Shown here in pieces: positions 5,664 to 49,330 of a stretch of 64,000 nt of DNA. The stretch spans positions 805,197 through 869,196 of the forward strand of contig OZ287694.1 of assembly GCA_965649825.1 (NCBI GenBank), given 5' to 3'. The notes beneath the pieces were generated by a model that saw nothing but the letters and a program-made list of their open reading frames with translations, was not told the DNA's origin and did no database searches. How positions within the stretch are numbered: the first letter of the stretch is position 1; the number at the start of each line of letters is the position of its first letter. Source of the stretch: Penicillus capitatus (lineage: Eukaryota > Plantae > Chlorophyta). The translations under genes were made by a program, and so were the position numbers.

Positions 5664-6827
5664 GTTTCATTTTTTAGATTGCGTGGCAATGGACCTGTGG
5701 TGCTCGGGGTTGAGACGTAGCGTCCCCGTTTGGAGTAGCGGACAACGGTTGACCCGACTTCGCCGACGCACCTCAACATCCGAGCGTCGCAGAAGACATC
5801 AGCTACGAATTAAAGCCATGGACAGAGGAGCAACGGCGGCGGCGTCAGTAAAGAAAGTGGCGTTTCAAGGAAAACCGGGAGCCTATAGCGAACTCGCCTG
5901 CATCGAGGTCTTTCCTCATCTCCAGCGCAACCCGTGCGAGTTATTCGACGATACATTTCAGGCAAGCAATACCGAATCCGAATTCTCACTCCAATGATGT
6001 GATGTGACGTAGGCACTCGTGCAAAACGATGCTGTCGATATGGCATTGCTGCCAGTCGAGAATTCGTGTGGAGGGACGATTCACGACGTCTACCTCCTGC
6101 TACCCAAGTATGGTTTGCATATCGTCGGCGAGTACTCGCTCAAGGTAAATCACTGTCTCTTGGCGCCACGTGGAACGCAGTTGACCGATATTAAATACGC
6201 CCTTAGTCACAAACAGGTCCGGTCTCTCACACTTTTCCGAAGGTCACACATGAGACAGGCATGTGGCATTAGGCACTCGCTCAATGTAAGAAATACTTGA
6301 AATCGAAAGGCATCACGCCCAAAGAGTACTCAGACACCGCCGGAGCGGCAGAGCTGCTCTCAAAGGAGCCACAGGCCGAGACAGCTGCCATCGCCAGTTC
6401 TAAAGCGGCAGAGATCTACGGTCTGGAGATACTGGACTGCAATATACAGGACATCAAGGATAACTATACGCGTTTTGTGGCATTGTCCCAGACGCCGTTG
6501 CCGCCGCCAATGCACGCGGACTCATCCAACGCCAAAACAACCATTCTCTTTGCGTGCAAAGACGGACCGAGCGGGCTGCTCGAGCTGCTGTCTGTGTTTC
6601 ATGCCCAGGGGATTGTGATGGAGAAGATCGAGCCTCAGCCCAATCCAGATATCCCACTCGTCGATTCGGCCAATGGCAAAGTCTACGGGCGGAGCTTCAA
6701 TTATCTCTTTGTCGTGGACTTCGTTGGCAGCGTGTCAGATCCACGCTACGCTCTGGCTCTGACGCATTTGGAAGAGCATTCTGAATTCTATCGAGTATTG
6801 GGGAGTTATCTGAAGCACAGGTTCTGA
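5629..6827 (+). CDS. ADT: Arogenate/prephenate dehydratase (PDT + ACT), plastid-targeted
   Basis: VAFQGKPGAYSE, LPVENSCGG, VNHCLL, DTAGAA, NYTRF, FNYLFVVDF, RVLGSY. Two short introns (~5962-6012, ~6217-6260). Arg/Ser-rich N-terminus; start uncertain. Confidence 0.9.
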
Positions 6828-9811: not shown

Positions 9812-11768
9812 ATGTCAACATATCATCATCCAGTGGATTATCATCATCCATTCTCTCGCGCACAGAAGATGCCTGCCATTGTCACAACCGCAACCGACTG
9901 GCGTAGAGTTGAATCGTGGTCGCCTCGACGGGAGAGCGGCGACAAAAAGAAGATCCGTTCATTTCGACTTTTGTCTACAAAGCGACTACAACCATCTACC
10001 AAACGTGGCCGCCCGAGTCTTCGAGGAACGAAGTTGTCCGCAGCGTCTTCTGCTGAAAGTATTGGCGAACCGTTTGACGACGCTTTGATCTCAGCTGCGT
10101 TGAGTGAACGTCGTCCCTGGTGGTCTTCGCCCTACGATGGCCAAATTCTGCAGTTTGCTCTTCCCATTCTCCTGGCTAACCTCGTCATACCGATAACGGC
10201 CTTTGTCGACACAGGTATCCCTCCCTCGCCCTACGGCGGCTCACAGCTGCGCTCATTTCTCACTCTTTTTTCGCTGTCAGCCGTCGTGGGGCGATTAGGG
10301 ACGGCACAATTGAGTGGAATCGCACTCGGCACCATCACCTTCTCTCTGATCAGCAGCTGCCTTGCTTTCCTTCCAGTTCTCATTGCTCCTTACGTCGCCC
10401 GAAATCATGCAGCCAAGAAATACGATAAGGTCTCAGACTCTCTGTCGTAAAACGGTTCCCTTGCTCACACAGCAGCAGGTCTCCTCATATGTGGCCCAAG
10501 TCTTGTGGCTGTCTCTTGGATTGGGTATCATTGTGGGCACCTTTATGTTCACTCAGGCAGATTTCGTCATTAATCGTAAGTCATCCATCCTCTGGCAACG
10601 AGATGCCCATGACAACTGCACACAGTGCTCAAGCCCGCCAGCGAAATTCGGCCGTTTGCAAGGACCTACCTCAGAATGGCGGCGACATATTTACCTGGTT
10701 ATATCTGCTTTGTCTGCTGTGGCGGCGCACTCAGAGGCCTAAAGAACACGGCATCGATCCTCAGGGCTTCAATTGCCTCCTGCATCATCAACTCCGTTCT
10801 TGATGTCGTCTTCGTCTTTGGTCTGTTCCTTTATGCTCCTCTGCATCGAGATCAATTGTGTGGCGGCTGAAGGGTTTAAATGGTCGATTGCTGGAGCTGC
10901 TCTTGCAACGGTCCTGTCCGTGTACACCAGTGTCGGAATGCTGCTGCACAAACTCTTGCATTCCGGTGTCCTGCGTGCAAAAGATTTTTTACAGTGGCCG
11001 GATATCGGGACGATTGTTCCCCTTGTCAAAGAAGGTCTTCGATACAGTCTGCGATCGGTTCTCTTAATTGGAATGGTGGCCTTGGCCTCTGTCTCGATAT
11101 CGCAACACGGCTCAGTCGTGCACGCAACGTTCGAGCTCTTCAAGCAGTTCTCGATGTTCATGTTCACGATCACGATGTCACTCGAACAGACGGTCCAGAC
11201 AATGAGTGCCAGCGCTCTCGGCTCAGATAATCCTGAAAAAGCACGTGGAATCATTCGCAGAGCCATCCAAGTGCGTGCGCCCTTCTCCGATCGCCTAAGT
11301 GTGAGTGGAATGGTTGTCGATCAGATATCCTTTGTTTTCTCTTCGGTATCGGCAGCTATGTTGATGGCGTTTTCCACACAGATTGCCAGAATCTTCACGA
11401 GCGATCCTGCCGTCATTCTTATGTGCGCCAGCACTGGACCCCTCTTCCTGATACTTTTCGTAAGGCCTGCCCTCGCCGGACATTCGGCTGCCAACTGCTT
11501 TGTTTTTTTCTAGCCGATTGGTGCCGTGGTATCTATTGTGGATGGAGCGCTCATTGGTGCTTCTAAGGTACCGTTGGTCTCACTCTCACAAGGCCTCGGT
11601 TATTCTTTGGGCATTCTCGCCATATTAGGATTCAATCACGCAGGATGGCTTAACGTTACCATTGCATGGTGCATCATTCGCACAGGAATGCTTCTCAGTG
11701 GTGTCATCACTGCCCCTTTCCTCTTTTCTTTCAAGTCAAGTCCGTATGGCTTTGCCCTTTTGCCTTAA
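9812..11768 (+). CDS. MATE (DinF-like) efflux transporter with N-terminal extension
   Basis: ILQFALPILLANLVIPITAFVDT, AVVGRLGTAQL, LEQTVQTM..ALG, DGALIGA. Multiple short introns and many TM segments. Confidence 0.85.
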
Positions 11769-11944
11769 CGCATGTGCCTGGCCTCATAAACAACGTACCA
11801 CACTCAGACAATTCCTTTTTCTTGAGATTCTTTACACGCCGCTCCGGAAGGCAGAACAACTGCCTTGTCGTGGATCGGCAGGTCCTTCGATACGTATCTT
11901 TTTGCTCAAAGAGCCTGAAAACAACTGAACACATATTGTGTTGT

Positions 11945-12894
11945 CATCGTGTTTCTGGAAGGATTCCCGAAACTAAATCGATTGAAATCGCTGTTGCTGA
12001 ACAACAATCGGATCTCACGGATAGGTCGCCATCTTCACGGTATCGACGTGACGTCTCACGCCTGCGGATCTGCGGACGAGCATTGTATGCTACGGTAGAT
12101 TCATTGCCGTCTCTGGAAATGCTGATTCTGACGAACAACAAGATCGAACAGTTACAGGTGAATGGCGTGATCATCATCCACAACCGTAGCTTCTCCCTGT
12201 GCTTGTCGTTCCAGGCACTGGATCCGTTGAGCATGTTGCCAAGCTTGAATCATCTGAGTCTTATTGGCAATCCGGTGACAAAGCTTCCCAACTACCGGTG
12301 CGTAAAACTGGGTTCAATGGCCGACAGCGATATCCGAGATCGGTTTGTGTGATGACCTTGTGCTCTGTTAGGCAGTATGTGGTGCAGTTGCTACCTCACC
12401 TGACGGTTCTCGATTTCACAAAGGTGAAAGCAAAGGTAACTGGTTAGGGGCGGTATCACCCTTGGGTGGAACCAACAATCCAACACGACACACACTTCTC
12501 ACTCTCTTTGTCGCTCTTTATCATGGCTGCCACTTTAGGAGCGACAACAAGTGGATGAGAGTCACCAGTTCGATCCCGACAAAGACATCGAGATGAAGGA
12601 AACGGAGGTCCAGTCGTCCAAAAAGAATGCTCCGACTGCTGAGCAACTCACCGCGATCAAAGCAGCTATACAGAATGCAGGCAACTGACGCACTCTTATG
12701 TTCTCACTCTATTTCTGTTTCATTCTTGCAGAGACACTAGAGGAGGTGCGTCAACTGGAAGCGGCACTCAAGAGCGGCGTCTTGCCATCAGAAATGCAGG
12801 AAGCTGAAGTTCCATCCACGGTTTCACCTGCGCACCATTACCCTAACCACACTTCCCGTTGCAGGACGTCGCCGAAGCTTCCAAAGATGCCGAC
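11945..12894 (+). pseudogene. SNRPA1: U2 snRNP A' 3' fragment (no start; native C-terminus replaced)
   Basis: Near-identical to 41949-41007(-). Begins mid-exon at IVFLEGFPKL and diverges after DVAEASKDAD. Confidence 0.9.
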
Positions 12895-13674
12895 GAAGAC
12901 CGATGCTGAATGCACCTTACGTCGGCGAAAAACCACAACAACAATTCCATTCGTTTCGAGATGCAAGCAGCTGTGTCGCCTAGATTTTCGTGGCGATGTG
13001 ACTGCCACGTGGAAAGGGGTCCTGCGCTTCGAGGGGCACTCGATGTCTTTTCAGAGAGCCTTCTGAGATCTCGAGGGGCGCTTTTCCTTGGCTCTCGTTC
13101 GACGCTGACTCATCCTGCCCAGGGGTCACCTCACTATCCGGGTATTTGACAGCGAACTCGAGCCTTTCGATCCATTCTCCGAACGCTTGTTCTTTCTTTC
13201 TCGCGACTGCGAACTCCCGCTGAGCATTTCCGTCGAGACGCAGTCGCCGCCGCATCTTCATTGCGATCCCATCTGAGCCTCTGTCAGAGGCTCACGTTGT
13301 TCTACGCGGCCTCAGCCGAAGACGTGCCGCACAGTTCAGCCTGGCACCCTATGGTGCAACGACGCGCGCGGTCAGAGACGCCTCAGAAAAGCGCTTGGTC
13401 GGGCGGCTGTCGAGAAGAATGGCCGAGGTACCCTCGGATCCCTTCCGCGCCCTTCGACGGTCCTCCACTCGTGCTGAGCACGGACTTTGACATCGGTAAG
13501 ATTACGATGGCTCATGACGAATGACTAACGGTAATATTTGCAGGATCTACGTTCATCTTGGTAGTTGATCAGTGTGGAATGCTACCTGCCCTGGTTCTGC
13601 AGCCAAGTCTGTCAAAGCCATTCCAGCCGATTTTGAAAATGCCACTCAACTGCGCCAGCTCCACCAGTTAAGCA

Positions 13675-14026
13675 CCATCAATGATCCTGCACCGGAATCG
13701 TCTGAAGCCATCCAGACCAAAGCAGATGCCAATCTCCTCTTGTGCACGAAGAAATCGAGCCAGATCCGATCGATGGATCTGTAAAGAGATCACCTGCCTG
13801 CCAGCTCGCATCTCCTGTCGAAGAGGAGACGCCTACGACGCACGAAGACAGCCAGAGCATGCTTGGCTAAGATCCCCGTACATGAGTCTGTCGATGATCT
13901 GCCTTTGATGCAGATCATCGCAGACCTTGTACATAGCTATAGCTACTCCATGTGCATGAGTCTGTCGATGATCTGCCTTTGATGCAGATCATCACAGACC
14001 TGCACATGGAGGCTCTCAACAAGCCA
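13675..14026 (+). repeat. Direct repeat R1 (with 2 hairpin units)
   Basis: Aligns with 16923-17361 at roughly 85-90% by eye. Palindrome cores GATGATCTGC-CTTTGAT-GCAGATCATC at 13893 and 13967. Confidence 0.9.
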
Positions 14027-16922
14027 TATCTACACCAATGTGCACAAGTCTTCCGAAGCTCTGCCAGTCGAAGCAGTGCAACGAGGTCCTGCACATGAAG
14101 ACAACTCGACTGTTTTCATGTGTCGATGCCGCATTGAATCGAACTCGGCAAGCAATGGAGCAGGACTGAGTGTCTACCAAAGAGCAAGCGTTGCGCTCGA
14201 GAACTCCACAGTCTTATCCAACCGTGCAGCCAACCTCGGTGGAGGCATTTACAGTCATGGCCCCACATTCAGTACAAGAGACGTCACTTTTCAGAATAAC
14301 TCTGCTGGTGACCAAGGGGGAGCGTTGTTTGGAGACCAGTTGAGTGTCTTGACAATCGCAGAATCGATCATCAACGGCAGTAGATCCAGATACGGAGCTG
14401 GCATCTTTGGCCGTGTGAACAGCAGTGTGACGATCCGTCTCAGCGATATACAACACAATCTGGCGACTGTAGCCGGAAGTGGAGTCCATTCGGAGAATTC
14501 AGTCGTGAACGTGCATCAGAGCTCCTTCTCAAAAAACAAAGCATCCATTGGTGGTTCATTGTTGCTCGTACATTCATATCTGCATGTGGACAACGCCAGC
14601 TTTTGGGACGAGGTGGCCACACAATCTGGACGGTCGATGGCCTTGATGCAGAACAGTTCAGCAGCGGTGATCGATGTGTTCGTCAAGAACTGTGCGGTGA
14701 GGACGGGAGGCGGAATAACACTTTCTGGATCGAATATGACATCTTCCGAACTGTGGATCTCCGCGTGCCGCGCTGAAGTTAAAGGCGGCGGCGTCTTCGC
14801 AAACAGATCATCGAGATTCCTGTCATCCAGCTCTTCATTCAGCGACAATGAAGCTGGAGAACATGGCGGCGTTGCCTTCGAATCGGACGAGCCACAGCAT
14901 CTGGCACTGCAGCTGAACGAATGTGCATTCAATTATAACAGTGCTCATTTAGGAGGTGCGTCTAACGACCTGCGATCATCCATTCTGAACACACACGTGT
15001 GCAGGTGCTGTCCATGTGTCTACTGGTTACGGACCGAGAAGCTGTTCCCGGACCAATGCTTCGTGCACATTCGTCGCCGTAACTGGCTGCCGTCTCTTGG
15101 GAAACAGCGCCGACGTTGCAGGTGGCGGCATCTTTGTGCAAGATGCCAATATCTTGCGCTACTCATGTGGCAGCAAGAAGACAAGCCGTCCCACCAGAGC
15201 TGCACTCGAACAAGACCCTCCAGAAACTCGACACCTTCCGTCCAAATCGCGAAGCGTGTTCCGATTGGGAATCAAACGATGCCCATCGCTACGGACCGAT
15301 TCTTGCGTCCTATGCCCAGTCCACTCGGGCATTCATCGAGAACCCAGAGAATCCAAACGAAGAGGCACGCGTCAAAGATCATCGAGCCGTTGTTCGCAGT
15401 CACAGAAGTGGAGATCCCCTTCCGTCGCTTTTCGTTGACGTTGTGGATGGATTTGGCCAGAACCTGTCCCTCGGCAGAGAAGATGCAGTCATTCTGGCAA
15501 CCATCTCGTCTCCGGATCGGTTCATTTCTGGAGAACTGACGGTGCCCCTAGACGAGCAGCCTAAACCGTTTCCAGCGATTTCAAATCTCCAGCATCCAGG
15601 AGTCTACGAGATTCATATCAATTTCAGCGAACCTGGACTGCCAGCTCTCCTGATTGAAGTCGAAGTTCGGAGCTGTCGGATTGGCGAGTTTGTCCAGGAG
15701 AACGGCACGCTCTGTGTGCAATGCAGTGGATCGCAGTACAATTTCAAATCCAATCACTCTGCCTGCGTGCCTTGTCCGGAACATGGAAACTGCACGACCG
15801 GTGTCATCCACCCGGACAAGGGATACTGGCACCGAATCCCGTGTTCGCAGTACACGCAACAGTGTCTCTCGAAAGAGGCTTGCGGCTTCGCCGAGCGTGA
15901 GGCGGATCTGATGGCGGCAACGCAGGATGTGGACAGCTGTGATTACAATGAGACGCTGGACACGGCATACACCGAAGCACAGTGCAAAAAAGTGATCTCT
16001 ATTGACTGGCGTCCACATATCTATGGATGGAGTGATATGGCCTAGGGATATACGGGTGTTCTCTGTGGATCGTGTGAATCGGGATATGGACGCTCACTTG
16101 CCTTCAACTGTGGCAAGTGTTACAGCGATTTCGCCGCAGCTGGACTCTTCGTGCTCTCTCTGATTGTGCTGTTCGGTCTTTCGTGCTTTGCCATTCGAAG
16201 CAATCTTCCCAGAAAACGTGTGACACCCTCCACGGCTTCTAGAGTCAGCCGAAGGAATCGTATTCCAATTGTGCAAGCCGAACAGCATGTGACGGATGTT
16301 CCGGTCGATTTTCAGATGGTGGAAATGCTACAGAGTGGATACGTACCGCCAGAGATCGTCCATCCAGACCTGATCATGTCCGCCGCTCTCCAAAAGAGAA
16401 CGAAAGACGATCCAGTATTGGCCGAGAACCACATCGTCGAGATCTTCAAAGTGCGCCATCTCTGCATACCCTGGCTCAGAATATTGACCGCTCTCTTGGA
16501 CTGTCAGATCACGGTCAACTTTCTCCAAATTGTGGCATCCGCTGCGACCATCAATGCAGGCTGGAACACGTGGATGCTTTCGTTGCTCTCGGCAGCAGGT
16601 AAGGACGTGACGTGCCGTGATCCGGTGTCTACGGTGTATGCGATTGGCAGATTTTGTGAGTGGAGCCGCATCTGAGGGCATCGTGCTCTCCATCGACTGT
16701 TTCTTCGGTGCAGAACAGGAACCCGCTCGGTCCATCATTCGAACATTGATCTATCTGCTGGTTCCTGTTGCCGTTCTGACGTTCTACATTGCCTTCTGGC
16801 TGACGCTGATGTGGACACTCGATGAAAATGCGTGGTACTTTGCCAGGAGAGCACTGCTGAGTCTTCTGGTCACGTGGCCTACCTGACCTACGTCTCCATC
16901 ACCCGTACAGCAGTCAATCGAG
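14027..16922 (+). pseudogene. Truncated polymorphic-membrane-protein-like (FxxN/GGA beta-helix repeat) protein with Cys-rich and TM regions
   Basis: Repeats such as FQNNSAGDQGGALF, FSKNKASIGG, FSDNEAGEHGG; then CVQCSGSQYNF..CVPCPEHGNC and TM helices. Apparent frameshifts near 15190 and 16872. No native N- or C-terminus. Confidence 0.75.
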
Positions 16923-17361
16923 CCCAATCGATGACCCCGTACCAGATTCGTCTGAAGCCATCCAGACCGAAGCAGATGCCAATCACCTCTCGTGCAAGAA
17001 GCAAAATCGAGCCAGACCCCATATCGATGGATCTGTGAAGAGGTCACCTGCCTGCCAGCTCGCATCTCCTGTAGAAGAGGAGACGCCTACGACGCACAAA
17101 GACAGCCAGACCATGCTTGGCAAGAGGCCTGTACATGAGTCTGTCGATGATCTGCCTTTGATGCAGATCATCGCAGACCATGTACATAGCTACACATCTG
17201 TGCATGAGTCTGCTGATGATCTGCCTTTGATGCAGATCATCACAGACCTGCACGTAGCTATATCCAACAGGCCATAGCTACCCATGTGCATGAGTCTGTT
17301 GATGGTCTGCCGTTTGATGCAGATCATCACAGACCTGCACATGGAGGCTCTGAACAGGCCA
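16923..17361 (+). repeat. Direct repeat R2 (with 3 hairpin units)
   Basis: Homologous to 13675-14026. Palindrome cores at 17146, 17215 and 17301. Confidence 0.9.
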
Positions 17362-19130
17362 GAGAATGACGTCCCCACCGGACTCTCCTTCTTCGTCTCA
17401 AGCCCCTGGAGCAATTGCATCCATGAATCTATCGGGTCATTCAGGTTCTGGAGAAAATGCACCGATGGATTAAATGGCTCCTCGAAAACACGAATCCTCT
17501 CTTCTCAAGCTGGACAGGCCAGAGACGATGGCAGCGATCTTACATCCAATACCATTATTGCCTCCGCCGTGTTTCAAGATGATGGACTGGCAGTTTAGAA
17601 GGTCTCGTTCGACTATTGATTGGCAAACCTGCTGGAGTGACACCGCCAAGCATCCCTTAGCAACCCCCAGACGATTAATGGACCGACAAGATTCTCTTCC
17701 ATGACGACGGAGTCTCCGATGCCACTGCAGAATGTCCAGTTGCATCACCTCCTCGACTCACACTCGAGTCCAGAATTCCCATGCCATACGTGTCCATAAT
17801 GGCTGAAAATCCAGCCATCGAAGAAATGGAGCACTACTTCTTCCTTATCACTCCCACTGCGCCCAATCGTCCCTTCAGCGAACTGCTTAGTGATCTCAGA
17901 GGAGATCAAACCGCTGGTGTTGTGGAACTCGCGGAGCTCAGCATCACTCTGTATCTCAATTCTGCTTCGGGATCGAGGTTAGACAATTGGGTGACAGAGA
18001 AGATACAAAGAACACCCTCTCCTGTTTTTTGACTGTGACATCGTAATGTGAGATGCTGCTCTTGTGTGTTAAACATATTGTCTTTGCAGTGACAGCTGTG
18101 TATAAGCATCATCCATCGTTAATCGATTTTCAACTCGGCACGTGCGTTACGCGACCACGTTGAGCGACAGCGTTGCAGCTAGAACCATCGCCGGAATCTT
18201 ACAACAAGGAATCAACACAAGAGTGTAGGTGGTGCACAAAGCAGGCGAACTCTGGTTCAGGTGACGGATCTCTCGACATGTGTATTGTCCTCTGGATGTA
18301 GAAGACTTCTTCGATCACGATTGCGTCTACGTCGTCCGACCAGATCTCCGTCGCAGATGGGCAGAGAGGTCTCTTCCTTGTCATCGTGTGTCCCTTGACC
18401 GAACAACGTCAACACCGACCTCCATGGCCAATGGACCATCTCTGGTTGCCGAGATGTTATGCAAATGTGCTGAGGTCCGCAAGACCTATGCATCGTTGCG
18501 AGACATGTCATTCCTAGGGTTTGACTTCGTATTTCCAGTAAAGATCCCGCAGGTATTGAGCGTTCCGCGGAGAGTCGCGCGAAACTGTAATGTTTTGGAG
18601 AAAAAGAGAGACAACGTTACGTGCCTTGAATCCAATCTACATTGTCAGGTGCTTCTGCTTAATTGTCTGTTTCTTGAGGGAGCGTCATGCGAACTCCCTT
18701 GTCTCAATGTTGCCTCGTTCTGTGCGACATGCGTTGCTAGAGAGAGCATGGCTCTCTTTGGTCTGCATCCTGTCCTGTCTCTTTAAAGAGTCTGTTCCCT
18801 ATGCATTGGTGGCTTTCAGATTCAAAGCTTTAGCATTCGACTGTTTCGACAATGTCCTTGCAGACAGCAAAGTTCTGTCGACACTGAAGATAAGGCGTTC
18901 GCTGCATATCATTGAGTTCGCAGTCCTTTCCCTTTTGTGAGCGATGTGGACATGGATCAGACGATGAGGAGGGCAGTGGTCGGGTTTAGTCACATGTTCT
19001 CGGTGACAAAACCCTTGACAAACGCGTCTATATTCTTTTAGCTGAGAGGGGAAGCCAATTCGAAGGACTGGAGCCAGTTGACCGCGCGGTTTCTAAGACA
19101 TACCATACTCAACTATGGATTTAGGGAAGG

Positions 19131-19285
19131 CCGTTTCGGCCTTGCAGGCAATAAACTGGGACAGATCGAAAATCTAGGGGCTACTGAAGTGAGATAAATG
19201 CCTTTCTACAAAATGCACAAGCAAGAGATGCCCGCGTATTAGATGTCAGATCAGTTTGACAGTCTCGTTTTCTCGGACAATGCCA
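19131..19285 (+). pseudogene. SNRPA1: U2 snRNP A' 5' fragment (exon NKLGQIENLGATE + intron + start of the next exon)
   Basis: Matches rc(42103-41948). Ends at GACAATGCCA, exactly where the 11945 fragment begins. Confidence 0.85.
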
Positions 19286-19353: not shown

Positions 19354-20037
19354 CTATTGTGATGTGACAGGTGCCGAGATCGGCTCCGATATCGACTGGT
19401 TGACGGGGACGACGCAGATCGATGTCCGGTAACGACTTGTTCCCGTTCTCCCCTCTTCGCCCGCACTTCCAATGCGCGTACTATACGAGATATACGTCAA
19501 TGTATTCCTCTCCCGGTCATAGATCCGTCGGATCCTCAATGTCTTGTTGCCAAAGACTAACAGCGTTCGACTTTTGGTCTCTGAGAACACTTGCTTCCCT
19601 TCGGGCCCACCCAAGACACTCATTTCCGGTAGGGTAATGGGTCCTGTCGCTGCACAGGTAACAGAAGACTGCGAGGGCTCGTTGATAAAATCCATGCTCG
19701 CGACTTTGTCTGCGAAGGATCTCTTGAAATCCGACAGATAGAGGGTGACGCCTTTGACGACTGGATCTTCCACCGCCATCACTTCGACGGCGTCTTTGAA
19801 AACGAGACCACTCGCATTGAACTCGCCAACTTTGCGCGCTTCCAAAGCAGAAACGGAGAAAACGAGCGATGCCGTGCAGAGACCGACAAGACCGACGCCG
19901 AGCGCGATCTTACGCGACGTCCCAAGAACCCAACGCGGCAGCGATGGTGCACAGTGTGAGACGCGAGGTGTGGAGCAACAGACAAAGTGTGAGATACGCG
20001 ACATCTTTAGTGGCGTGGCGCGATGGACCGACTGCAT
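19354..20037 (-). CDS. CreA-family protein (PF05981-like) with putative organellar transit peptide
   Basis: VEDPVVKGVTLYLS, SSVTC..TGPI, KQVFSE, RIYDRERNTLTYISYS and ICVVPV follow the E. coli CreA pattern recalled from memory. Intronless. Confidence 0.75.
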   Translation of the reverse strand: MQSVHRATPLKMSRISHFVCCSTPRVSHCAPSLPRWVLGTSRKIALGVGLVGLCTASLVFSVSALEARKVGEFNASGLVFKDAVEVMAVEDPVVKGVTLYLSDFKRSFADKVASMDFINEPSQSSVTCAATGPITLPEMSVLGGPEGKQVFSETKSRTLLVFGNKTLRIRRIYDRERNTLTYISYSTRIGSAGEEGRTGTSRYRTSICVVPVNQSISEPISAPVTSQ

Positions 20038-25018: not shown

Positions 25019-25090
25019 TGTCACTGGGGAGAATCGAACTCCCGTTTCTGGAGCCACAATCCAGTGTCCTCACCACTAGACGACAGTGAC
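25019..25090 (-). tRNA. trnH: tRNA-His(GUG)
   Basis: rc gives GTCACTG acceptor stem, D arm GTCTAGTGGTGAGGAC, anticodon arm CTGGA-TTGTGGC-TCCAG and T arm GGGAG-TTCGATT-CTCCC, followed by a T-run. Confidence 0.95.
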
Positions 25091-40982: not shown

Positions 40983-42259
40983 TCAGTCAGCGTCCTGCAT
41001 CTCTTTGTCGGCATCTTTGGAAGCTTCGGCGACGTCCTGCAACGGGAAGTGTGGTTAGGGTAAATGGTGCGCAGGTGAAACCGTGGATGGAACTTCAGTT
41101 TCCTGCATTTCTGATGGCAAGACGCCACTCTTGAGTGCCGCTTCCAGTTGACGCACCTCCTCTAGTGTCTCTGCAAGAATGAAACAGAAATAGAGTGAGA
41201 ACATAAGAGTGCGTCAGTTGCCTGCATTCTGTATAGCTGCTTTGATCGCGGTGAGTTGCTCAGCAGTCGGAGCATTCTTTTTGGACGACTGGACCTCCGT
41301 TTCCTTCATCTCGATGTCTTTGTCGGGATCGAACTGGTGACTCTCATCCACTTGTTGTCGCTCCTAAAGTGGCAGCCATGATAAAGAGCGACAAAGAGAG
41401 TGAGAAGTGTGTGTCGTGTTGGATTGTTGGTTCCACCCAAGGGTGATAACGCCCCTAACCAGTTACCTTTGCTTTCACCTTTGTGAAATCGAGAACCGTC
41501 AGGTGAGGTAGCAACTGCACCACATACTGCCTAACAGAGCACAAGGTCATCACTCAAACAGATCTCAGATATCGCTACCGGCCATTGAACCCAGTTTTAC
41601 GCACCGGTAGTTGGGAAGCTTTGTCACCGGATTGCCAATAAGACTCAGATGATTCAAGCTCGGCAACATGCTCAACGGATCCAGTGCCTGGAACGACAAG
41701 CACAGGGAGAAGCTACGGTTGTGGATGATGATCACGCCATTCACCTGTAACTGTTCGATCTTGTTGTTCGTCAGAATCAGCATTTCCAGAGACGGCAATG
41801 AATCTACCGTAGCATACAATGCTCGTCCGCATGCGTGAGACGTCACGTCGATACCGTGAAGATGGCGACCTATCCGAGAGATTCGATTGTTGTTCAGCAA
41901 CAGCGATTTCAATCGATTCAGTTTCGGGAATCCTTCCAGAAACACGATGGCATTGTCCGAGAAATCGATACTGTCAAACTGATCCTGGCATCCCATACGA
42001 GCGCACCTCTCGTTTCTGCTTTTTGCGGAAAGGCATCTATCTCACTTCAGTGGCTCCTAGATTTTCGATCTGTCCCAGCTTATTGCCTGCAAGGCCGAAA
42101 CGGAACTTCACGGTTCGGTAGGACAAAAGCCGAACCCCTGAGGCTGATTTCGTACTGCTGGATGCAGTTCATGTACTGAGGACTTTGCAAGATGAGTTCC
42201 GGAGTCAAGCGCCCGGCAATGCGTGGACCGACAGCCGGCGTTGCATTCACCGTCTCCAT
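40983..42259 (-). CDS. SNRPA1: U2 small nuclear ribonucleoprotein A' (intact)
   Basis: GRLTPELILQSPQYMN, LRGNKLGQIENLGATEDQFDSIDFSDN, LRR repeats, GNPVTKLPNYR, LDFTKVK. Complete ORF after splicing, including one GC-AG intron; TGA at 40983-40985. Confidence 0.92.
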
Positions 42260-42357
42260 TGTCCACGACAATAATGCGACGGACGTCCACAATGAGTTCA
42301 TCCCGTCATCGACGTCGACGGTCTTTATGTCGCAGCTTTTAGCCAAAGTCGTCCGTC

Positions 42358-42870
42358 ATGACACAGCGAAGTGGTCGCATCCATCTGCTCGAACGGCACA
42401 ACTTCGAATTTTATGACGGCGCCGTGAGCATCGGACCTTTCCGCTCGTTCGCTGCGATCGTCGGCCCCAACGGCTCCGGCAAGTCGAATATCATATACGC
42501 CATCAGTTTCATCCTGGGCGTAAAGATGGAACATCTTCGAGGGCGCCTCGAAGATCTCCTTTACGACCGAGGCAAGGCCACGCGATGCGCGGTCAACGAG
42601 CTCCAGTCCTTCGACTTGGCTTTCCCTCTCAGCTAAAAGAATATAGACGCGTTTGTCAAGGGTTTTGTCACCGAGAACATGTGACTAGGCCCGACAACTG
42701 GTCTCCGCATCGTCTGATCCATGTCCACATCGCTCAAAAAGGAAAGGACTGTGAATTCAATGATATGCAGCGAACGCCTTATCTTCAGTGCTGACAGAAC
42801 TTTGCTGTCTGCAAGGACATTGTCGAAACAGTCGAATGCTAAAGCTTTGAATCTGAAAGCCACCAACGCA
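42358..42870 (+). pseudogene. SMC1: SMC1 (cohesin) N-terminal fragment
   Basis: GRIHLLERHNF..YDG...IGPFRSFAAIVGPNGSGKSNII.AISFILG with Walker A. The ORF stops at 42636; only faint degenerate similarity continues to about 42870. Confidence 0.75.
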
Positions 42871-44343
42871 TAGGGAACAGACTCTTTAAAGAAACAGGAC
42901 AGGATGCAGACCAAAGAGAGCCATGCTCTCTCTAGCAACGCATGTCGCACAGAACGAGGCAACAATGAGACAAGGGGGTTCGCATATCGCTCCCTCAAGA
43001 AACAGACAATTAAGCAGGAAGACCTGACAATGCACATTGGATTCAAGGCACGTTGTCTCTCTTTTTCTTCTCTAGATCATAACAGTTTCGCGCGACTCTC
43101 CGCGGAACGCTCAATTCCTCCGGGATCTTTACCGGAAATACGAAGTCAAACCCTAGGAATGACATGTCTCTCAACGATGCACGGGTCTTGCGGACCTCAG
43201 TACATTTGCATAACATCTCGGCAACCAGATATTGTCCATTGGCCATGGAGGTCGGTGTTGACGTTGTTCGGTCAAGGGAAACATATGAGATGACAAGCAA
43301 GAGACCTCTTTGCCCATCTGCGACGGAGATCTGGTCGGTTGACGCAGAAAAATGTGTGATCGTAATCACAGTCGCAGACGCAGTCGCGATCGAAGAAGTC
43401 TTCTAGATCCAGAGGACAATACACGCATCGAGAGTTCCATCACCTGAACCAGAGTTCGCCTGCTTTGTGCACCACCTACACTCTTGCGTTGTTCTCCTTG
43501 TTGTACGATTCCGGCGATGGTTCTAGCTGCAACGCTGTCGCTCAACATGGTCGCGTAACGCACGTGCCGAGTTGAAAATCGATTAACGATGGACGATGCT
43601 TACACACAGCTGTCACTGCAAAGACAACATGTTTAACACAAAAGAGCAGCATCTCACATTACGATGTCACAGTCAAAAAACAGGAGAGGGCGTTCTTTGT
43701 ATCTTCTCTGTCACCCAATTGTCTAACCTCGATCCCGAAGCAGAATTGAGATACAGAGTGATGTTGAGCTCCTCGAGTTGCACAACACCAGCGGTTTGAT
43801 CTCCTCTGAGATCACTCAGCAGTTCGCTGGAGGGGCGATTGGGTGCAGCGGGAGTGACAAAAAAGAAGTAGTGCTCCGTTTCTTCGATGGCTGGATTTTC
43901 AGCCAATATGGACACGAATGTCATGGGAATTCTGGACTCGAGTGTGAGTCGAGGAGGTGATGCCACAGGACATTCTGCAGTGGCATCGACGATTTCGTAT
44001 TCATTGAGGAAAATCTTGTTGGTCCATGCATCGTCTGGGGGTTGCTGATGGGTCTTGGCGGTGTCACTCCAGCAGGTTTGTCAATCAATAGTCGAACGAG
44101 ACCTTCTGAAACTGCCAGTCCATCATCTCGAAACACGGCGGAGGCAATAATGGTATTGGATGTAAGATCGCTGCCATCGTCTCTGGCCTGTCCAGCTTGA
44201 GAAGAGAGGATTCGTGTTTTCGAGGAGCCATTTAATCCATCGGTGCGTTTTCTCCAGAACCTGAATGACCCGATAGATTCATGGATGCAATTGCTCCAGG
44301 GGCTTGGGACGAAGAAGGAGAGTCCGGTGGGGACGTCATTCTC

Positions 44344-44783
44344 TGGCCTGTTCAGAGCCTCCATGTGCAGGTCTGTGATGATCTGCATCAAACGGCAGAC
44401 CATCAACAGACTCATGCACATGGGTAGCTATGGCCTGTTGGATATAGCTACGTGCAGGTCTGTGATGATCTGCATCAAACGGCAGACCATCAACAGACTC
44501 ATGCACACGGGTGTAGCTATGTACAAGGTCTGCGATGATCTGCATCAAAGGCAGACCATCGACAGACTCATGTACAGGCCTCTTGCCAAGCATGGTCTGG
44601 CTGTCTTCGTGCGTCGTAGGCGTCTCCTCTTCTACAGGAGATGCGAGCTGGCAGGCAGGTGACCTCTTCACAGATCCATCGATATGGGGTCTGGCTCGAT
44701 TTTGCTTCTTGCACGAGAGGTGATTGGCATCTGCTTCGGTCTGGATGGCTTCAGACGAATCTGGTACGGGGTCATCGATTGGG
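44344..44783 (-). repeat. Direct repeat R2 (copy B, 3 hairpin units)
   Basis: rc of 16923-17361. Confidence 0.9.
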
Positions 44784-46895
44784 CTCGATTGACTGCTGTC
44801 CGGGTGATGGAGACGTAGGTCAGGTAGGCCACGTGACCAGAATACTCAGCAGTGCTCTCCTGGCAAAGTACAACGCGTTTTCATCGAGTGTCCACATCAG
44901 CGCCAGCCAGAAGGCAATGTAGAACGTCAGAACGGCAACGGGAACCAGCAGATGGATCACTGTTCGAATAACGGACCGAGCGGGTTCCTGTTCTGCACTG
45001 AAGAAACAGTCGATGGAGAGCACGATGCCCTCAGATGCGGCTCCACTCACAAAATCTGCCAATCGCATACACCGTAGACACCGGATCACGTCACGTCACG
45101 TCCTTACCTGCTGCCGAGAGCAACGAAAGCATCCACGTGTTCCAGTCTGCATTGATGGTCGCAGCGGCTGCCACAATTTGGAGAAAGTTGACCGTGATCT
45201 GACAGTCCAAGAGAGCGGTCAACAATGCAAGACAGGGTATGGATATGGCAGAGATGGCGCACTTTGAAGATCTCGACGATGTGGTTCTTGGCCAATGCTG
45301 GATCTTCTTTCATTCTCTTTTGGAGAGCGGCGGACATGATCAAGTCTGGATGGACGATCTCTGGCGGTACGTATCCACTCTGTAGCATTTCCACCATCTG
45401 AAAATCGACCGGAACATCCGTCACATGCTGTTCGGCTTGCACAATTGGAATCCGATTCCTTCGGCTGACTCTCGAAGCCGTGGAGGGTGTCACACGTTTT
45501 CTGGGAAGATTGCTTCGAATGGCAAAGCACAAAAGACCGAACAGCACAATCAGAGAGAGCACGAAGAGTCCAGCTGCGGCGAAATCGCTGTAACACTTGC
45601 CGCAATTGAAGGCATGTGAGCGTCCATATCCCGATTCGCACGATCCACAGAGAACACCCGTATATCCCTAGGCCATATCACTCCATTTATAGATATGTGG
45701 ACGCCAGTCAATAGAGATCACTTTTTTGCACTGTGCTTCGGTGTATACCGTGTCCAGCGTCTCGTTGTAATCACAGCTGTCCACATCCTGCGTTGCCGCC
45801 ACCAGATCCGCCTCACGCTCGGCGAAGCCGCAAGCCTCTTTCGAGAGACACTGTTGCATGTACTGCGAACACGGGATTCGGTGCCAGTATCCCTTGTCCG
45901 GGTGGATGACATCGGTCGTGCAGTTTCCATGTTCCGGACAAGGCACGCAGGCAGAGTGATTGGATTTGAAATTGCACTGCGATCCACTGCATTGCACACA
46001 GAGTGTGCCGTTCTCCTGGACAAACTCGCCAATCTGACAGCTAGCTCCGAACTTCGACTTCAATCAGAAGAGCTGGCAGTCCAGGTTCGCTGAAATTGAT
46101 AGGAATCTCGATGATCTGTCTGCGAAGACACCGCCGCCTTTAGCTTCAGCGCGGCACGCGGAGATCCACAGTTCGGAAGATCTCATACTCGATCCAGAAA
46201 GTGTTATTCCGCCTCCCGTCCTCGCCGTACAGCTCTTGATGAACACATCGATCACCGTTGCTGAACTGTTCTGCATCAAGGCCATCGACCGTCCAGATTG
46301 TGTGGCCACCTCGTCCCAAAAGCTGGCGTTGTCCACATGCAGATATGAATGTACGAGCAACAATGAACCACCAATGGATGCTTTGTTTTTTGAGAAGGAG
46401 CTCTGATGCACGTTCACGACTGAATTCTCCGAATGGATTCCACCTCCGGCTACAGTCGCCAGATTATGTCGCATTTCGCTGAGACAGATCGTCACACTGC
46501 TGTTCGCACGGCCAAAGATGCCAGCTCCGTATCTGGATCTACTGCCGTTGATGATCGATTCTTCGATTGTCAAGACACTCATCTGGTCTCCAAACAACGC
46601 TCCCCCTTGTTCACCCGCGGAGTTATTCCGAAAAATGACTTCTCTTGTACTGAATGTGGAGCCATGACTGTAAATGCCTCCACCGAGGTTGGCTGCACGG
46701 TTGGATAAGACTGTGAAGTTCTCGAGCGCAGCGCTTGCTCTTTGGTAGACACTCAGTCCTGCTCCATTGCTTGCCGAGTTCGATTCAATGCGGCATCGAC
46801 GCATGAAAACAGTCGAGTTGTCTTCATGTGCAGGACCTCGTTGCACTGCTTCGACTGGCAGAGCTTCGGAAGACTTGTGCACATTGGTGTAGATA
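44784..46895 (-). pseudogene. Pmp-like repeat gene fragment, copy B, internally deleted
   Basis: rc of 14027-16922 minus about 14820-15614. Extra AGCT duplication near 46040. Shares the frameshift equivalent to 16872. Confidence 0.75.
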
Positions 46896-47247
46896 TGGCT
46901 TGTTGAGAGCCTCCATGTGCAGGTCTGTGATGATCTGCATCAAAGGCAGATCATCGACAGACTCATGCACATGGAGTAGCTATAGCTATGTACAAGGTCT
47001 GCGATGATCTGCATCAAAGGCAGATCATCGACAGACTCATGTACGGGGATCTTAGCCAAGCATGCTCTGGCTGTCTTCGTGCGTCGTAGGCGTCTCCTCT
47101 TCGACAGGAGATGCGAGCTGGCAGGCAGGTGATCTCTTTACAGATCCATCGATCGGATCTGGCTCGATTTCTTCGTGCACAAGAGGAGATTGGCATCTGC
47201 TTTGGTCAGGATGGCTTCAGACGATTTCGGTGCAGGATCATTGATGG
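46896..47247 (-). repeat. Direct repeat R1 (copy B, 2 hairpin units)
   Basis: rc of 13675-14026. Confidence 0.9.
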
Positions 47248-47811
47248 TGCTTAACTGGTGGAGCTGGCGCAGTTGAGTGGCATTTTCAAAATCGGCTGGA
47301 ATGGCTTTGACAGACTTGGCTGCAGAACCAAGGCAGGTAGCATTCCACACTGATCAACTACCAAGATGAACGTAGATCCTGCAAATATTACCGTTAGTCA
47401 TTCGTCATGAGCCATCGTAATCTTACCGATGTCAAAGTCCGTGCTCAGCACGAGTGGGGGACCGTCGAAGGGCGCGGAAGGGATCCGAGGTACCTCGGCC
47501 ATTCTTCTCGACAGCCGCGCGGCCAAGCGCTTTTCTGAGGCGTCTCTGACCGCGCGCGTCGTTGCACCATAGGGTGCCAGGCTGAACTGTGCGGCACGTC
47601 TTCGGCTGAGGCCGCGTAGAACAACGTGAGCCTCTGACAGAGGCTCAGATGGGATCGCAATGAAGATGCGGCGGCGACTGCGTCTCGACGGAAATGCTCA
47701 GCGGGAGTTCGCAGTCGCGAGAAAGAAAGAACAAGCGTTCGGAGAATGGATCGAAAGGCTCGACTTCGCTGTCAAATACCCGGATGGTGAGGTGACCCCT
47801 GGGCAGGATGA

Positions 47812-49233
47812 GTCAGCGACGAACGAGAGCCAAGGAAAGGCGTCCCCCGAAATCTCAGAGGGATCTCTGAAAAGACAGCATCTGTTCGGATCGCCAGCGA
47901 AGCCACTTCGCCCGAAGCTTTTGAACCCGCAGTTGGAGAGAAGAATGTCTCGAGTCGCAGCATTCTTGTCGTCGGAGGAACGGGAACGCATGAGCGTCGG
48001 GTCTCCGCATCTCTCGACCCCACAACACCAAACAGCGTTACTCGTTCGTAGGTCGTGCGCAAGCCGTTGGATGGTGGGTACGACGTTCGCTGCATCGTCC
48101 TAGTACGGCAGAATCCAGCAGACTTCATGCGGGACTGGGGTGCCACGACGGTTTTGGTGAGGCACTCGTATGGGGAGGCCCTCCTTTGTGCTAAATACGG
48201 ATCGGTGTTTCTCGCAGGCCGATCTGACGAACCCCGCATCGCTACCTGCTGCAATGGTCGGAATTCATACCGTCATCGACTGCGCAACGGCACGGCCAGA
48301 AGAATCGGCGCAGAAGCTCGATTGGGAGGGCAAAGTTGCTCTCATTCAATGCGCCCAAGTGTGACCAATGCAGAGGTCACACACCTTTCTTCACACACCT
48401 CTCCTGACGCAGGCGGTGGGGATTCAGCGATACATCTTCTTCTCCATCTTTAACTGCGACAAGCATCCAGAGGTCCCACTGATGAACATCAAGACCTGCA
48501 CCGAGGAGTTCCTGGCAGAGAGTGGAATGAACTACACCATCTTCCGGTTGTGTGGATTCATGCAGGTTGGCCGGTCGTGTGCACACAAGGCAGCGATTGG
48601 GTGTTGACTTTATGCAGGCTATCATCGGAAACTACGCGGTTCCCATTATGGAAGAGACTCAGGTGTGGAGCACAGACGACGATACGCGCACGTCGTGCCT
48701 CGACAGTCAAGACATCGCTCGTATGACGATGGCCGCTCTCCGCTACAGAGAGACATTTGGTAAGGGAAACGATGCCGGTCGATCCTTCTGATCCGTCATC
48801 GGCTGCTGCTCCAGGCAAGACGTTGACGTTGGCAGGGCCGAAGGCTTACACGACAGACGAGATCATCGAGATGTCCGAGAAGAGAGCGAATGCCACAGCG
48901 AAGGTTACAAAGGTCGGATGTCCATCACGGTGAAGACAAGAGACCGTCATGACAGGAGCACTCGTAGGTGCCTGTGGGCGTCCCGAAGGCAACACGGTCG
49001 TTTCTCCGCGGTCTTCAGTGGGCCAAAGACGCTGCCGATCGATTAGCCTTTGCCGAAGTGCTCTCTTCGAACGAAGTCTTAGCGCTGAGATGGAAGAGAC
49101 CATGAAGCTGCTACGAATCGACCCGGCCTCCTTTACCACGGTTGAATCCTACTTGGACGAATATTTCAAACGCATCCTATCGAAATTGAAAGAGGTGGCC
49201 GCCACAAGCAAGCAAACAGATTTCTACATATAA
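47812..49233 (+). CDS. HCF244: HCF244/Ycf39-like atypical SDR (PSII assembly factor); 5' end unresolved, possibly degenerate
   Basis: DFMRDWGA, GIHTVIDCATARPEE, DWEGKVALIQCA, CDKHPEVPLMNIK, RLCGFMQ, DRLAFAEVL and C-terminus SKQTDFYI*. The Rossmann motif reads GGTGTHERR. Confidence 0.85.
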
Positions 49234-49257
49234 CCCAGACATGTTGAAAAGATCGAT

Positions 49258-49330
49258 TGCTCGTGTCCGGGATTGAACCGGAGACCTTCTGCGTGTAAAG
49301 CAGACGTGATAACCACTACACCACACGAAC
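49258..49330 (-). tRNA. trnV: tRNA-Val(UAC)
   Basis: rc GTTCGTGTGGTGTAGTGGTTATCACG-TCTGC-TTTACAC-GCAGA-AGGTC-TCCGGTTCAATCCCGGA-CACGAGCA forms a full cloverleaf. Confidence 0.95.

Follow-up and report, generated by a model that had tools for sequence, protein, structure and literature searches.

We analysed a 64,000-nt stretch of Penicillus capitatus DNA (GCA_965649825.1, OZ287694.1, 805,197-869,196, forward strand; hereafter the window) that contains two copies, A and B, of one multi-gene segment. The segment comprises the U2A' gene (LRR_9), a fragment of a gene for a PMP-repeat, Cys-rich membrane protein, and a TPMT-like gene, X, as identified by Pfam and structure-database searches. Copy B holds a complete U2A' gene, whereas copy A, which lies between a MATE gene and a CreA gene, holds two U2A' halves with introns at the same spacing (tblastn with human U2A'). 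In the following, d1 and d2 denote the 5′ and 3′ parts of U2A', b the PMP-gene fragment, and a0, R1, R2 and c the remaining blocks (Table 1). Exon 1 of U2A', a short bidirectional promoter and an SMC1 remnant of about the first 115 codons are present in B but not in A. This remnant matched the SMC1 N-terminus of a relative at 82-83% (tblastn), and the gene was identified as SMC1 from PDB matches.

Self-BLAST of the window showed that copy A, 7.3 kb long and read on the plus strand, is a cyclic permutation of copy B, read on the minus strand, with the donor 22 kb away. Four collinear blocks (E-values 0 to 6e-46) were aligned: (i) A 11945-12906 with B 41949-40997 (97.5%); (ii) A 13044-14825 with B 47877-46097 (97.4%); (iii) A 15607-19087 with B 46110-42587 (94.1%); and (iv) A 19131-19285 with B 42103-41948 (87.8%). 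The order is thus d2/a-b-c-X/d1 in A and a-b-c-X-...-d1-d2 in B, as given in the initial annotation, although the B boundary now falls at 40997. The U2A' gene is broken in exon 3, between ...FSDNA and IVFLEG... (tblastn). Copy A begins at 11945 (TTGT/CATCGTGTTTCTGG) and ends at 19285 (GGACAATGCCA/ACATGG), and both ends abut at 41948/41949 of B, which reads GGACAATGC-CA-TCGTG, with a 2-nt CA overlap; the junction strings quoted earlier for these three positions, and the overlap, were found in place. By our estimate, two unrelated breakpoints in a donor of 7 kb or more would be expected to coincide within ±2 nt with a probability below 1e-3. The two copies differ by 2-12% in sequence and by four indels of 137-781 bp. 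Copy B is without A 14826-15606 (781 bp), while A is without ~484 bp of B (42104-42586).

The single-exon CreA gene has its closest named relative in Caulerpa lentillifera (64% identity), so the source is probably an ulvophyte green alga of Bryopsidales type. It served as a synteny anchor, with which three loci were retrieved. Among them were L001, a 1.84-Mb contig of the European Nucleotide Archive (ENA; ERZ25074695, ctg340529) found through the exact CreA protein of the window, and L002 from a relative (ERZ26696514, ctg303759), with a CreA 90% identical and a genome ~85% identical to the window. In L002, MATE and CreA are adjacent without copy A, and both flanks are collinear with the window at 80-86% identity. 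This empty site reads ...ACATTGTGTTGT/CCAAAATTGAAATCATGTCC, where the window reads ...ATATTGTGTTGT, the insert (CATCG...AATGCCA) and ACATGGAGAACATGTCC. The insertion target was a spacer of 246 bp that separates MATE from CreA, two convergent genes. Compared with the empty site, the left junction of A displays a microhomology of C and the right one of CCA, and there is no target-site duplication; over the insertion and head-to-tail junctions of A together, microhomology amounts to 0-3 nt. Because L002 has an empty MATE-CreA site and the U2A' locus at B is syntenic with the relatives, copy A is the derived copy, inserted after the split from the nearest sampled relative. The empty-site comparison in relatives that the initial annotation had proposed thus gave a clean result and agrees with its placement of the insertion between MATE and CreA; the reopening of a circle within U2A', which it also proposed, would be the most economical route to this arrangement. 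An open reading frame (ORF) of 228 aa (11666-12352, plus strand) spans the boundary between the MATE 3′ flank and the U2A' 3′ half, in the orientation of MATE, and was also called in L001 (P0038). It could give rise to a read-through or chimeric transcript.

Copy A was found whole, with every junction, in L001, which was 99.575% identical to the window over the part compared (window 9361-30032), with 88 differences that had the look of natural polymorphism. Likewise, L006, a second sequence of the window species covering copy B, carried that copy with its junctions at 99.785% identity (44 differences). Given the 2-12% divergence between A and B, their several indels and the same junctions in L001 and L006, a repeat-collapse artefact is very unlikely. 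The differences between L001 and the window were clustered, with ~0.8% in 21.8-29.7 kb, four events inside copy A and almost none in 10.9-21.8 kb; the ENA contig represents a different haplotype, strain or assembly.

Besides introns and intergenic DNA, copy A retains parts of four genes, which differ in orientation. Since introns, promoter-side and intergenic DNA are kept, the copy was evidently not RNA-mediated. No transposase, integrase or Rep domain was detected by Pfam in the ORFs of A or in the genes called in L001, and no terminal inverted repeats of A were found. The initial annotation, which had noted the absence of a transposase, terminal inverted repeats and long terminal repeats (LTRs), is supported here. 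An LTR retrotransposon or retrocopy was rejected because introns and promoter-side DNA are retained and because R1 and R2 flank only the PMP fragment and not the whole unit.

The two ends of B had been described as joined inside A through ~150 bp of unrelated filler. They are indeed joined, but directly. The sequence in question, A 12907-13043, had no match elsewhere in the window or in the first six loci (word size 7). It aligned, however, over its full length to L007 ~6295-6440 in a third copy, C, in which 343 bp lie directly upstream of segment a; A 12907-13043 corresponds to the proximal 137 bp of this stretch. Copies B and D (see below) are without these 343 bp and share the same deletion junction, CAGATGC/TGTCTTTTC. 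As the supposed filler is ancestral donor sequence that C has kept and B and D have lost, J_A, the head-to-tail junction of A, is direct in the alignment of A, B, C and D: U2A', five codons before its stop, is joined to a position 137 bp upstream of where B now ends (GACGAAGA/CCGATGCTGAATGC). The 343-bp stretch was lost from B at a later time. Scans of metagenomes of the Joint Genome Institute (JGI) with the J_A string and with a conserved string of U2A' exon 3 gave 0 matches, as this collection does not include the lineage.

Comparison with the U2A' loci of relatives, L004 and L005 (ERZ26696514, contigs ctg303759 and ctg303802), shows that A was not copied from B as it now stands, the source implied by the initial annotation. 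In both loci the order is X - TPMT2 - SMC1(-) - U2A'(+) - RPL3, whereas TPMT2 and most of SMC1 are gone from B in the window species. Downstream of X, A still has ~45 bp of ancestral sequence that are missing from B. It then jumps, with CYGTTT as microhomology, into the tail of U2A' intron 1, with TPMT2, SMC1, the promoter and U2A' exon 1 removed; B jumps 47 bp earlier than A, into SMC1 codon ~75. The 781-bp deletion of B lies between CGAGATTCnTnTCA microhomologies, and the deleted sequence is kept in A, C, D and a further locus, E. Since A keeps the ancestral ~45 bp and the two TPMT2-SMC1 deletions differ, present-day B was not the template. The losses of TPMT2 and SMC1 in A and B are tolerable because C has intact copies. 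The two relatives' loci, on two long contigs of one sample, agree in gene order around U2A' and have near-identical ORFs (e.g. 97% for the SMC1 hinge); they may represent homeologous chromosomes, different haplotypes or two species that occur together.

Divergence between A and B was bimodal, with 2.4% from 11945 to about 17650 and 7.7% beyond. A change point at ~17653 was strongly favoured (twice the log-likelihood difference, 2dLL, was 79), and 0 of 200 shuffles reached that value. With the relatives as outgroup, derived changes were found in both A and B, and A's own branch was ~5 times longer in c than in d2. As this branch is presumably neutral, selection alone was rejected as the cause of the bimodality. 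An origin of the c-X-d1 arc of A from the lineage of C and D was likewise rejected, the arc being closest to B. Quartet sites for ((A,B),(C,D)) numbered 26:1:2 in a0, 41:1:1 in b and 29:5:3 in c. In the flank at 47878-49265, divergence was 3.9% for B-D, 6.6% for B-C and 6.0% for C-D, which gave the tree ((B,D),C). This flank tree and the 343-bp deletion shared by B and D, set against ((A,B),(C,D)) elsewhere, point to gene conversion within the family. The deletion common to B and D (47877/47878 of the window and ~8271 of L008) and their similarity in the adjoining flank are direct evidence of conversion between copies 55 kb apart. Gene conversion would also be the simplest explanation for the young-looking arc of A (11945 to ~17650). 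The insertion of A is at least one quarter as old as the separation from the relative.

At least four copies, A and B among them, make up a family that extends over 225 kb. Further SMC1 loci of the window species were sought through 90% protein clusters, which yielded three more loci, all on the same contig. Copies C and D share a junction, J1, at which window position 49265, 8 nt inside the 3′ end of tRNA-Val, is joined with a TG microhomology to 42017 in U2A' intron 2 (TTGCTCGTG/CATTTTGTGG). J1 is thus a head-to-tail junction of this neighbourhood that is independent of J_A. Copy D starts and ends at one point of SMC1, at an exon/intron border, with a 0-4 nt overlap, and is a second unit-length permuted structure. 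The 13 kb common to C and D take in a stretch of a PMP gene, which is complete only on the D side. In C, the sequence runs on in register through the remainder of SMC1; D therefore appears to be the primary copy and C a later recombination product, formed through SMC1 homology. The b fragment was 95.2% identical to an intact gene in locus E (L011 11574-14407). The initial annotation had told the history as a single event. A is a permuted duplicate, as it held, but not an isolated one, because C, D, J1 and a native PMP cluster lie on the same contig.

In both relatives SMC1 (cohesin) stands head-to-head with U2A'. The window species retains at that place a remnant of ~115 codons (42192-42592), and its only intact SMC1, together with TPMT2, lies ~185 kb away and inverted in copy C (L007 8368-12462, ~1.09 Mb). 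With SMC1 intact only there, an essential gene has been relocated by the same duplication family. Another partial c/R copy (L012 19-876, 84-90% identical) was seen ~10 kb left of C, so the family has more fragments than its four main copies. L009, a 31.8-kb contig at 20x, carries a variant of D (98-99% identical) with an indel of ~340 bp ~90 bp beyond the D/W junction, which suggests a second haplotype or strain. In A, as in B (46871-47224 and 44408-44758), the repeats R1 and R2 exactly bracket the 2.84-kb PMP fragment in an R-b-R structure; each of their 69-74-bp units has a palindrome with a 10-bp stem (GATGATCTGC...GCAGATCATC). A long staggered-break duplication and a Campbell-type integration are candidate origins of this structure. 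The window has two tRNA genes, the tRNA-Val at J1's donor breakpoint and a tRNA-His at 25019-25090.

Table 1. Features of copies A and B, their flanks and the wider family (window positions unless a locus or contig is named)
Feature	Position	Strand	Remarks
Left flank, 3′ spacer after MATE	11769..11944		last 10 nt ATTGTGTTGT match the L002 empty site
Copy A	11945..19285	+	order d2/a0-R1-b-R2-c-X/d1; present in L001, absent in L002
d2, U2A' 3′ part, mid exon 3 to 5 codons before stop	11945..12901	+	introns kept; Pfam LRR_9
J_A, head-to-tail junction	12899..12906	+	alignment of A, B, C and D; 0-1 nt microhomology
Former 'filler', remnant of the 343-bp ancestral stretch	12907..13043	+	aligns to copy C
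a0, non-coding-looking	13044..13670	+	equals B 47877-47251; A-B 2.4%
R1, 380-bp direct repeat	13671..14051	+	69-74-bp tandem units
b, 2.84-kb internal PMP-gene fragment	14090..16918	+	Pfam Chlam_PMP; 14826-15606 deleted in B
R2, second 380-bp repeat copy	16921..17297	+	87% identical to R1
c and X (TPMT-like gene region)	17298..19130	+	tblastx/tblastn to L004 3241-4783
Ancestral sequence downstream of X, lost from B	19088..19130	+	alignment with relative L004
Deletion junction in A, CYGTTT microhomology	19126..19135	+	L004-equivalent ~4783 joined to ~9890
d1: U2A' intron 1 tail, exon 2, intron 2, first part of exon 3	19131..19285	+	closest to B, not C/D
Right flank, 69 bp from the CreA stop codon	19286..19353		L002 reads CCAAAATTGAAATCATGTCC; CCA common with donor end
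CreA, single exon	19354..20037	-	Pfam CreA 5.5e-28; synteny anchor
Copy B, resident locus, intact U2A'	40997..47877	-	RPL3 side syntenic with relatives
U2A' intron 1 and exon 1, bidirectional promoter, SMC1 remnant	42104..42592	-	absent from A
Deletion junction in B	42585..42595	-	L004-equivalent 4736/9409; TPMT2 and most of SMC1 gone
781-bp deletion junction of B inside the PMP fragment	46097..46110	-	self-BLAST; A, C, D and E keep the sequence
B flank, duplicated also in C and D, ends at J1	47878..49265	-	93.3-93.8% to L007 and L008
tRNA-Val(TAC)	49258..49330	-	J1 donor breakpoint 8 nt inside 3′ end
Copy C	L007 and L012, contig ctg340529 1.08-1.10 Mb		only intact SMC1 and TPMT2
Copy D	L008, ~1.21-1.22 Mb		D unit is L008 4053-10782
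Locus E	1.225-1.241 Mb		native cluster of full-length PMP genes

The unit length of A, its direct head-to-tail junction, the end-joining character of its junctions, the kept introns and the lack of element machinery together point to a circle that was cut once. A circular DNA intermediate, reopened and end-joined, is probably the best explanation of copy A; we infer the circle itself, its closing and the gene conversion from comparison of the sequences. The ancestral segment would have consisted of the 343-bp stretch, a0, R1, the PMP fragment, R2, c and X, probably TPMT2 and SMC1, the promoter and U2A'. This segment, or a copy of it, may have closed as a circle when its U2A' end, five codons before the stop, was joined to its upstream end, either through end joining or by popping out of a tandem duplication that lasted only briefly. 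The circle would then have been broken once, in U2A' exon 3, and the resulting unit-length linear molecule ligated into a break in the MATE-CreA spacer by non-homologous or microhomology-mediated end joining. The two copies would then have decayed independently, with loss of TPMT2, SMC1, the promoter and U2A' exon 1 from A, and of TPMT2, most of SMC1 and the stretches of 781 bp and 343 bp from B, and gene conversion would have homogenised part of them (A 11945 to ~17650). Unit-length permuted products seem to have arisen at least twice in the family (A and D).

Several points weigh against this reading. No circle was observed, and sequence data alone do not tell a free circle apart from a tandem duplicate that was resolved to the length of one unit, or from a looped template that was replicated. 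The bimodal divergence calls for additional events, which would be two conversion tracts with B as the partner. The two independent TPMT2-SMC1 deletions have left breakpoints only ~47 bp from each other, an unexplained coincidence, and the CCA common to target and donor end at the right junction widens the overlap of the donor ends to a range of -1 to +2 nt. Finally, the permuted appearance of D lacks an empty-site control, and the history of C and D is only partly resolved.

Alternatively, A may have been assembled at a broken replication fork in the MATE-CreA spacer without any free circle, through microhomology-mediated break-induced replication or fork stalling and template switching (MMBIR/FoSTeS). 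The path would have led from the spacer into U2A' exon 3 and to the end of that gene, then upstream of a and through a-b-c-X, on to U2A' from intron 1 to exon 3, and back into the spacer. All junctions have 0-6 nt of microhomology, the jump from X to intron 1 in A could be a switch rather than a later deletion, and a replicative interaction is invoked for similar human cases by Chicote et al. (2020; PMC7450558). However, entry and exit in U2A' within 2 nt of each other are not predicted by independent switches, although a circular or looped template would predict them, and after reinterpretation of the filler no templated insertions are left; we regard this path as unlikely. Another possibility is that a tandem duplication made J_A, that two cuts at one site in neighbouring units, perhaps a recurrent fragile or nuclease site in U2A' exon 3, released a linear fragment of exactly one repeat, which was inserted elsewhere, and that the array later collapsed. 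Head-to-tail junctions are a signature of tandem duplication too, the family has two different ones, and CA at both ends of A fits a filled-in staggered cut of 2 nt. Yet no tandem array is left at B, C or D, a hypothetical site-specific cut and the loss of the array would be needed in addition, and release of the fragment by recombination between units gives a circle, i.e. the model preferred here. On balance, the tandem route is improbable.

The sharp change point and the longer A branch in c would also fit an origin in two steps, in which an older c-X-d1 insertion (~7.7%) was followed by a younger d2-a-b insertion (~2.4%) beside it. This requires either two coincidences, seamless abutment and a matching U2A' point, or a circular template, and gene conversion, independently evident in the family, is simpler, which makes the two-step origin quite improbable. 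A mobile element with a circular intermediate (Crypton, Helitron or IS-like, autonomous or not) could account for several copies on one chromosome and for the hairpin-forming tandem units of R1 and R2. We consider it highly improbable, because the ends differ from copy to copy and lie inside host genes (U2A' exon 3, SMC1 intron, tRNA 3′ end), terminal repeats and target-site duplications are missing, and the Pfam searches described above found no domain of a recombinase, Rep protein or transposase. The DNA comes from a metagenome-type assembly of long reads, in which a chimeric join or a misplaced repeat may occur, but the divergence and the four indels exclude collapsed repeats and the distinct sequence L001 has an identical architecture despite its 88 natural-looking differences; an assembly artefact is accordingly barely credible. 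Models with inversion, or with tandem duplication plus inversion, were rejected by reasoning, since they would invert or relocate the block from CreA to RPL3, which is collinear with the relative.

A more far-reaching version of the circular route is that the U2A'/SMC1/PMP segment has repeatedly passed through circular, perhaps transiently self-replicating, germ-line DNA of a siphonous-type green alga that gave rise to serial permuted copies and moved SMC1 by 185 kb. Under this serial reading, A was opened in U2A' exon 3 and D in an SMC1 intron, and J_A and J1, the latter at a tRNA gene, are the circle junctions. We offer it as a speculative proposal that is rather unlikely to hold in full.

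Retrocopies derived from circular RNAs (circRNAs) by back-splicing have a permuted exon order but are without introns and flanking DNA. Copy A resembles them in its permuted exon order; unlike them, it keeps introns, intergenic DNA and parts of four genes, which argues that A was DNA-mediated. In cattle, colour-sidedness reportedly results from serial translocation at the KIT locus through circular intermediates, in work attributed to Durkin and colleagues from 2012. The Cs29 and Cs6 alleles of cattle are described in PMC12235870. As at KIT, insertion of a permuted copy elsewhere would have preceded a second event of circle type in which the first product took part, making the process serial; the cattle segments, however, are hundreds of kb long, moved between chromosomes and have a visible phenotype, whereas those described here measure 7-13 kb and lie within 225 kb of one chromosome.

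Circle-based amplification is also documented, by Galeote et al. (2011; PMC3053389), for the 17-kb 'region B' of Zygosaccharomyces bailii in wine strains of Saccharomyces cerevisiae. This region likewise occurs as dispersed copies of differing internal organisation with little or no breakpoint homology, for which extrachromosomal circular DNA (eccDNA) and non-homologous insertion were inferred, but it has a functional autonomously replicating sequence (ARS), is of foreign origin, and its copies are recent and polymorphic between strains. The algal segment is native and older (2-12% diverged) and contains parts of the essential host genes U2A' and SMC1. In the human genome, eccDNA-mediated insertion duplications (Takahashi and Innan 2020, PMC7188851) and segmental duplications with circular intermediates (Chicote et al. 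2020) are reported, with the same reversal of order from A-B to B-A, only microhomology or short indels at breakpoints and a model in which a circle is cut and reintegrated. The human cases measure between a few kb and hundreds of kb, and most of them have no outgroup empty site resolved to the base pair; here, the empty site, the 2-nt overlap of the ends and the direct circle junction can be read, and a second permuted copy is present in the same family. The initial annotation was not aware of a described algal case, and we found none either in the searchable literature of a limited library, while duplications of this kind are known from yeast, cattle and humans.

Copy A thus belongs to a known class, circle-mediated insertion duplications, as an unusually well resolved and possibly serial example. 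Fixed footprints of circle duplication that are resolved to the base pair are rare outside yeast and mammals. This locus records the donor, the copy, the relative's empty site, the circle junction, the opening point, the decay after insertion and gene conversion. It also illustrates how such events can break one essential gene, U2A', into two pseudogene parts, while another, SMC1, survives intact only where it was newly placed. If the serial reading were true, eccDNA would be a recurrent driver of gene-order change and of the relocation of essential genes in this alga, and not a one-off accident.

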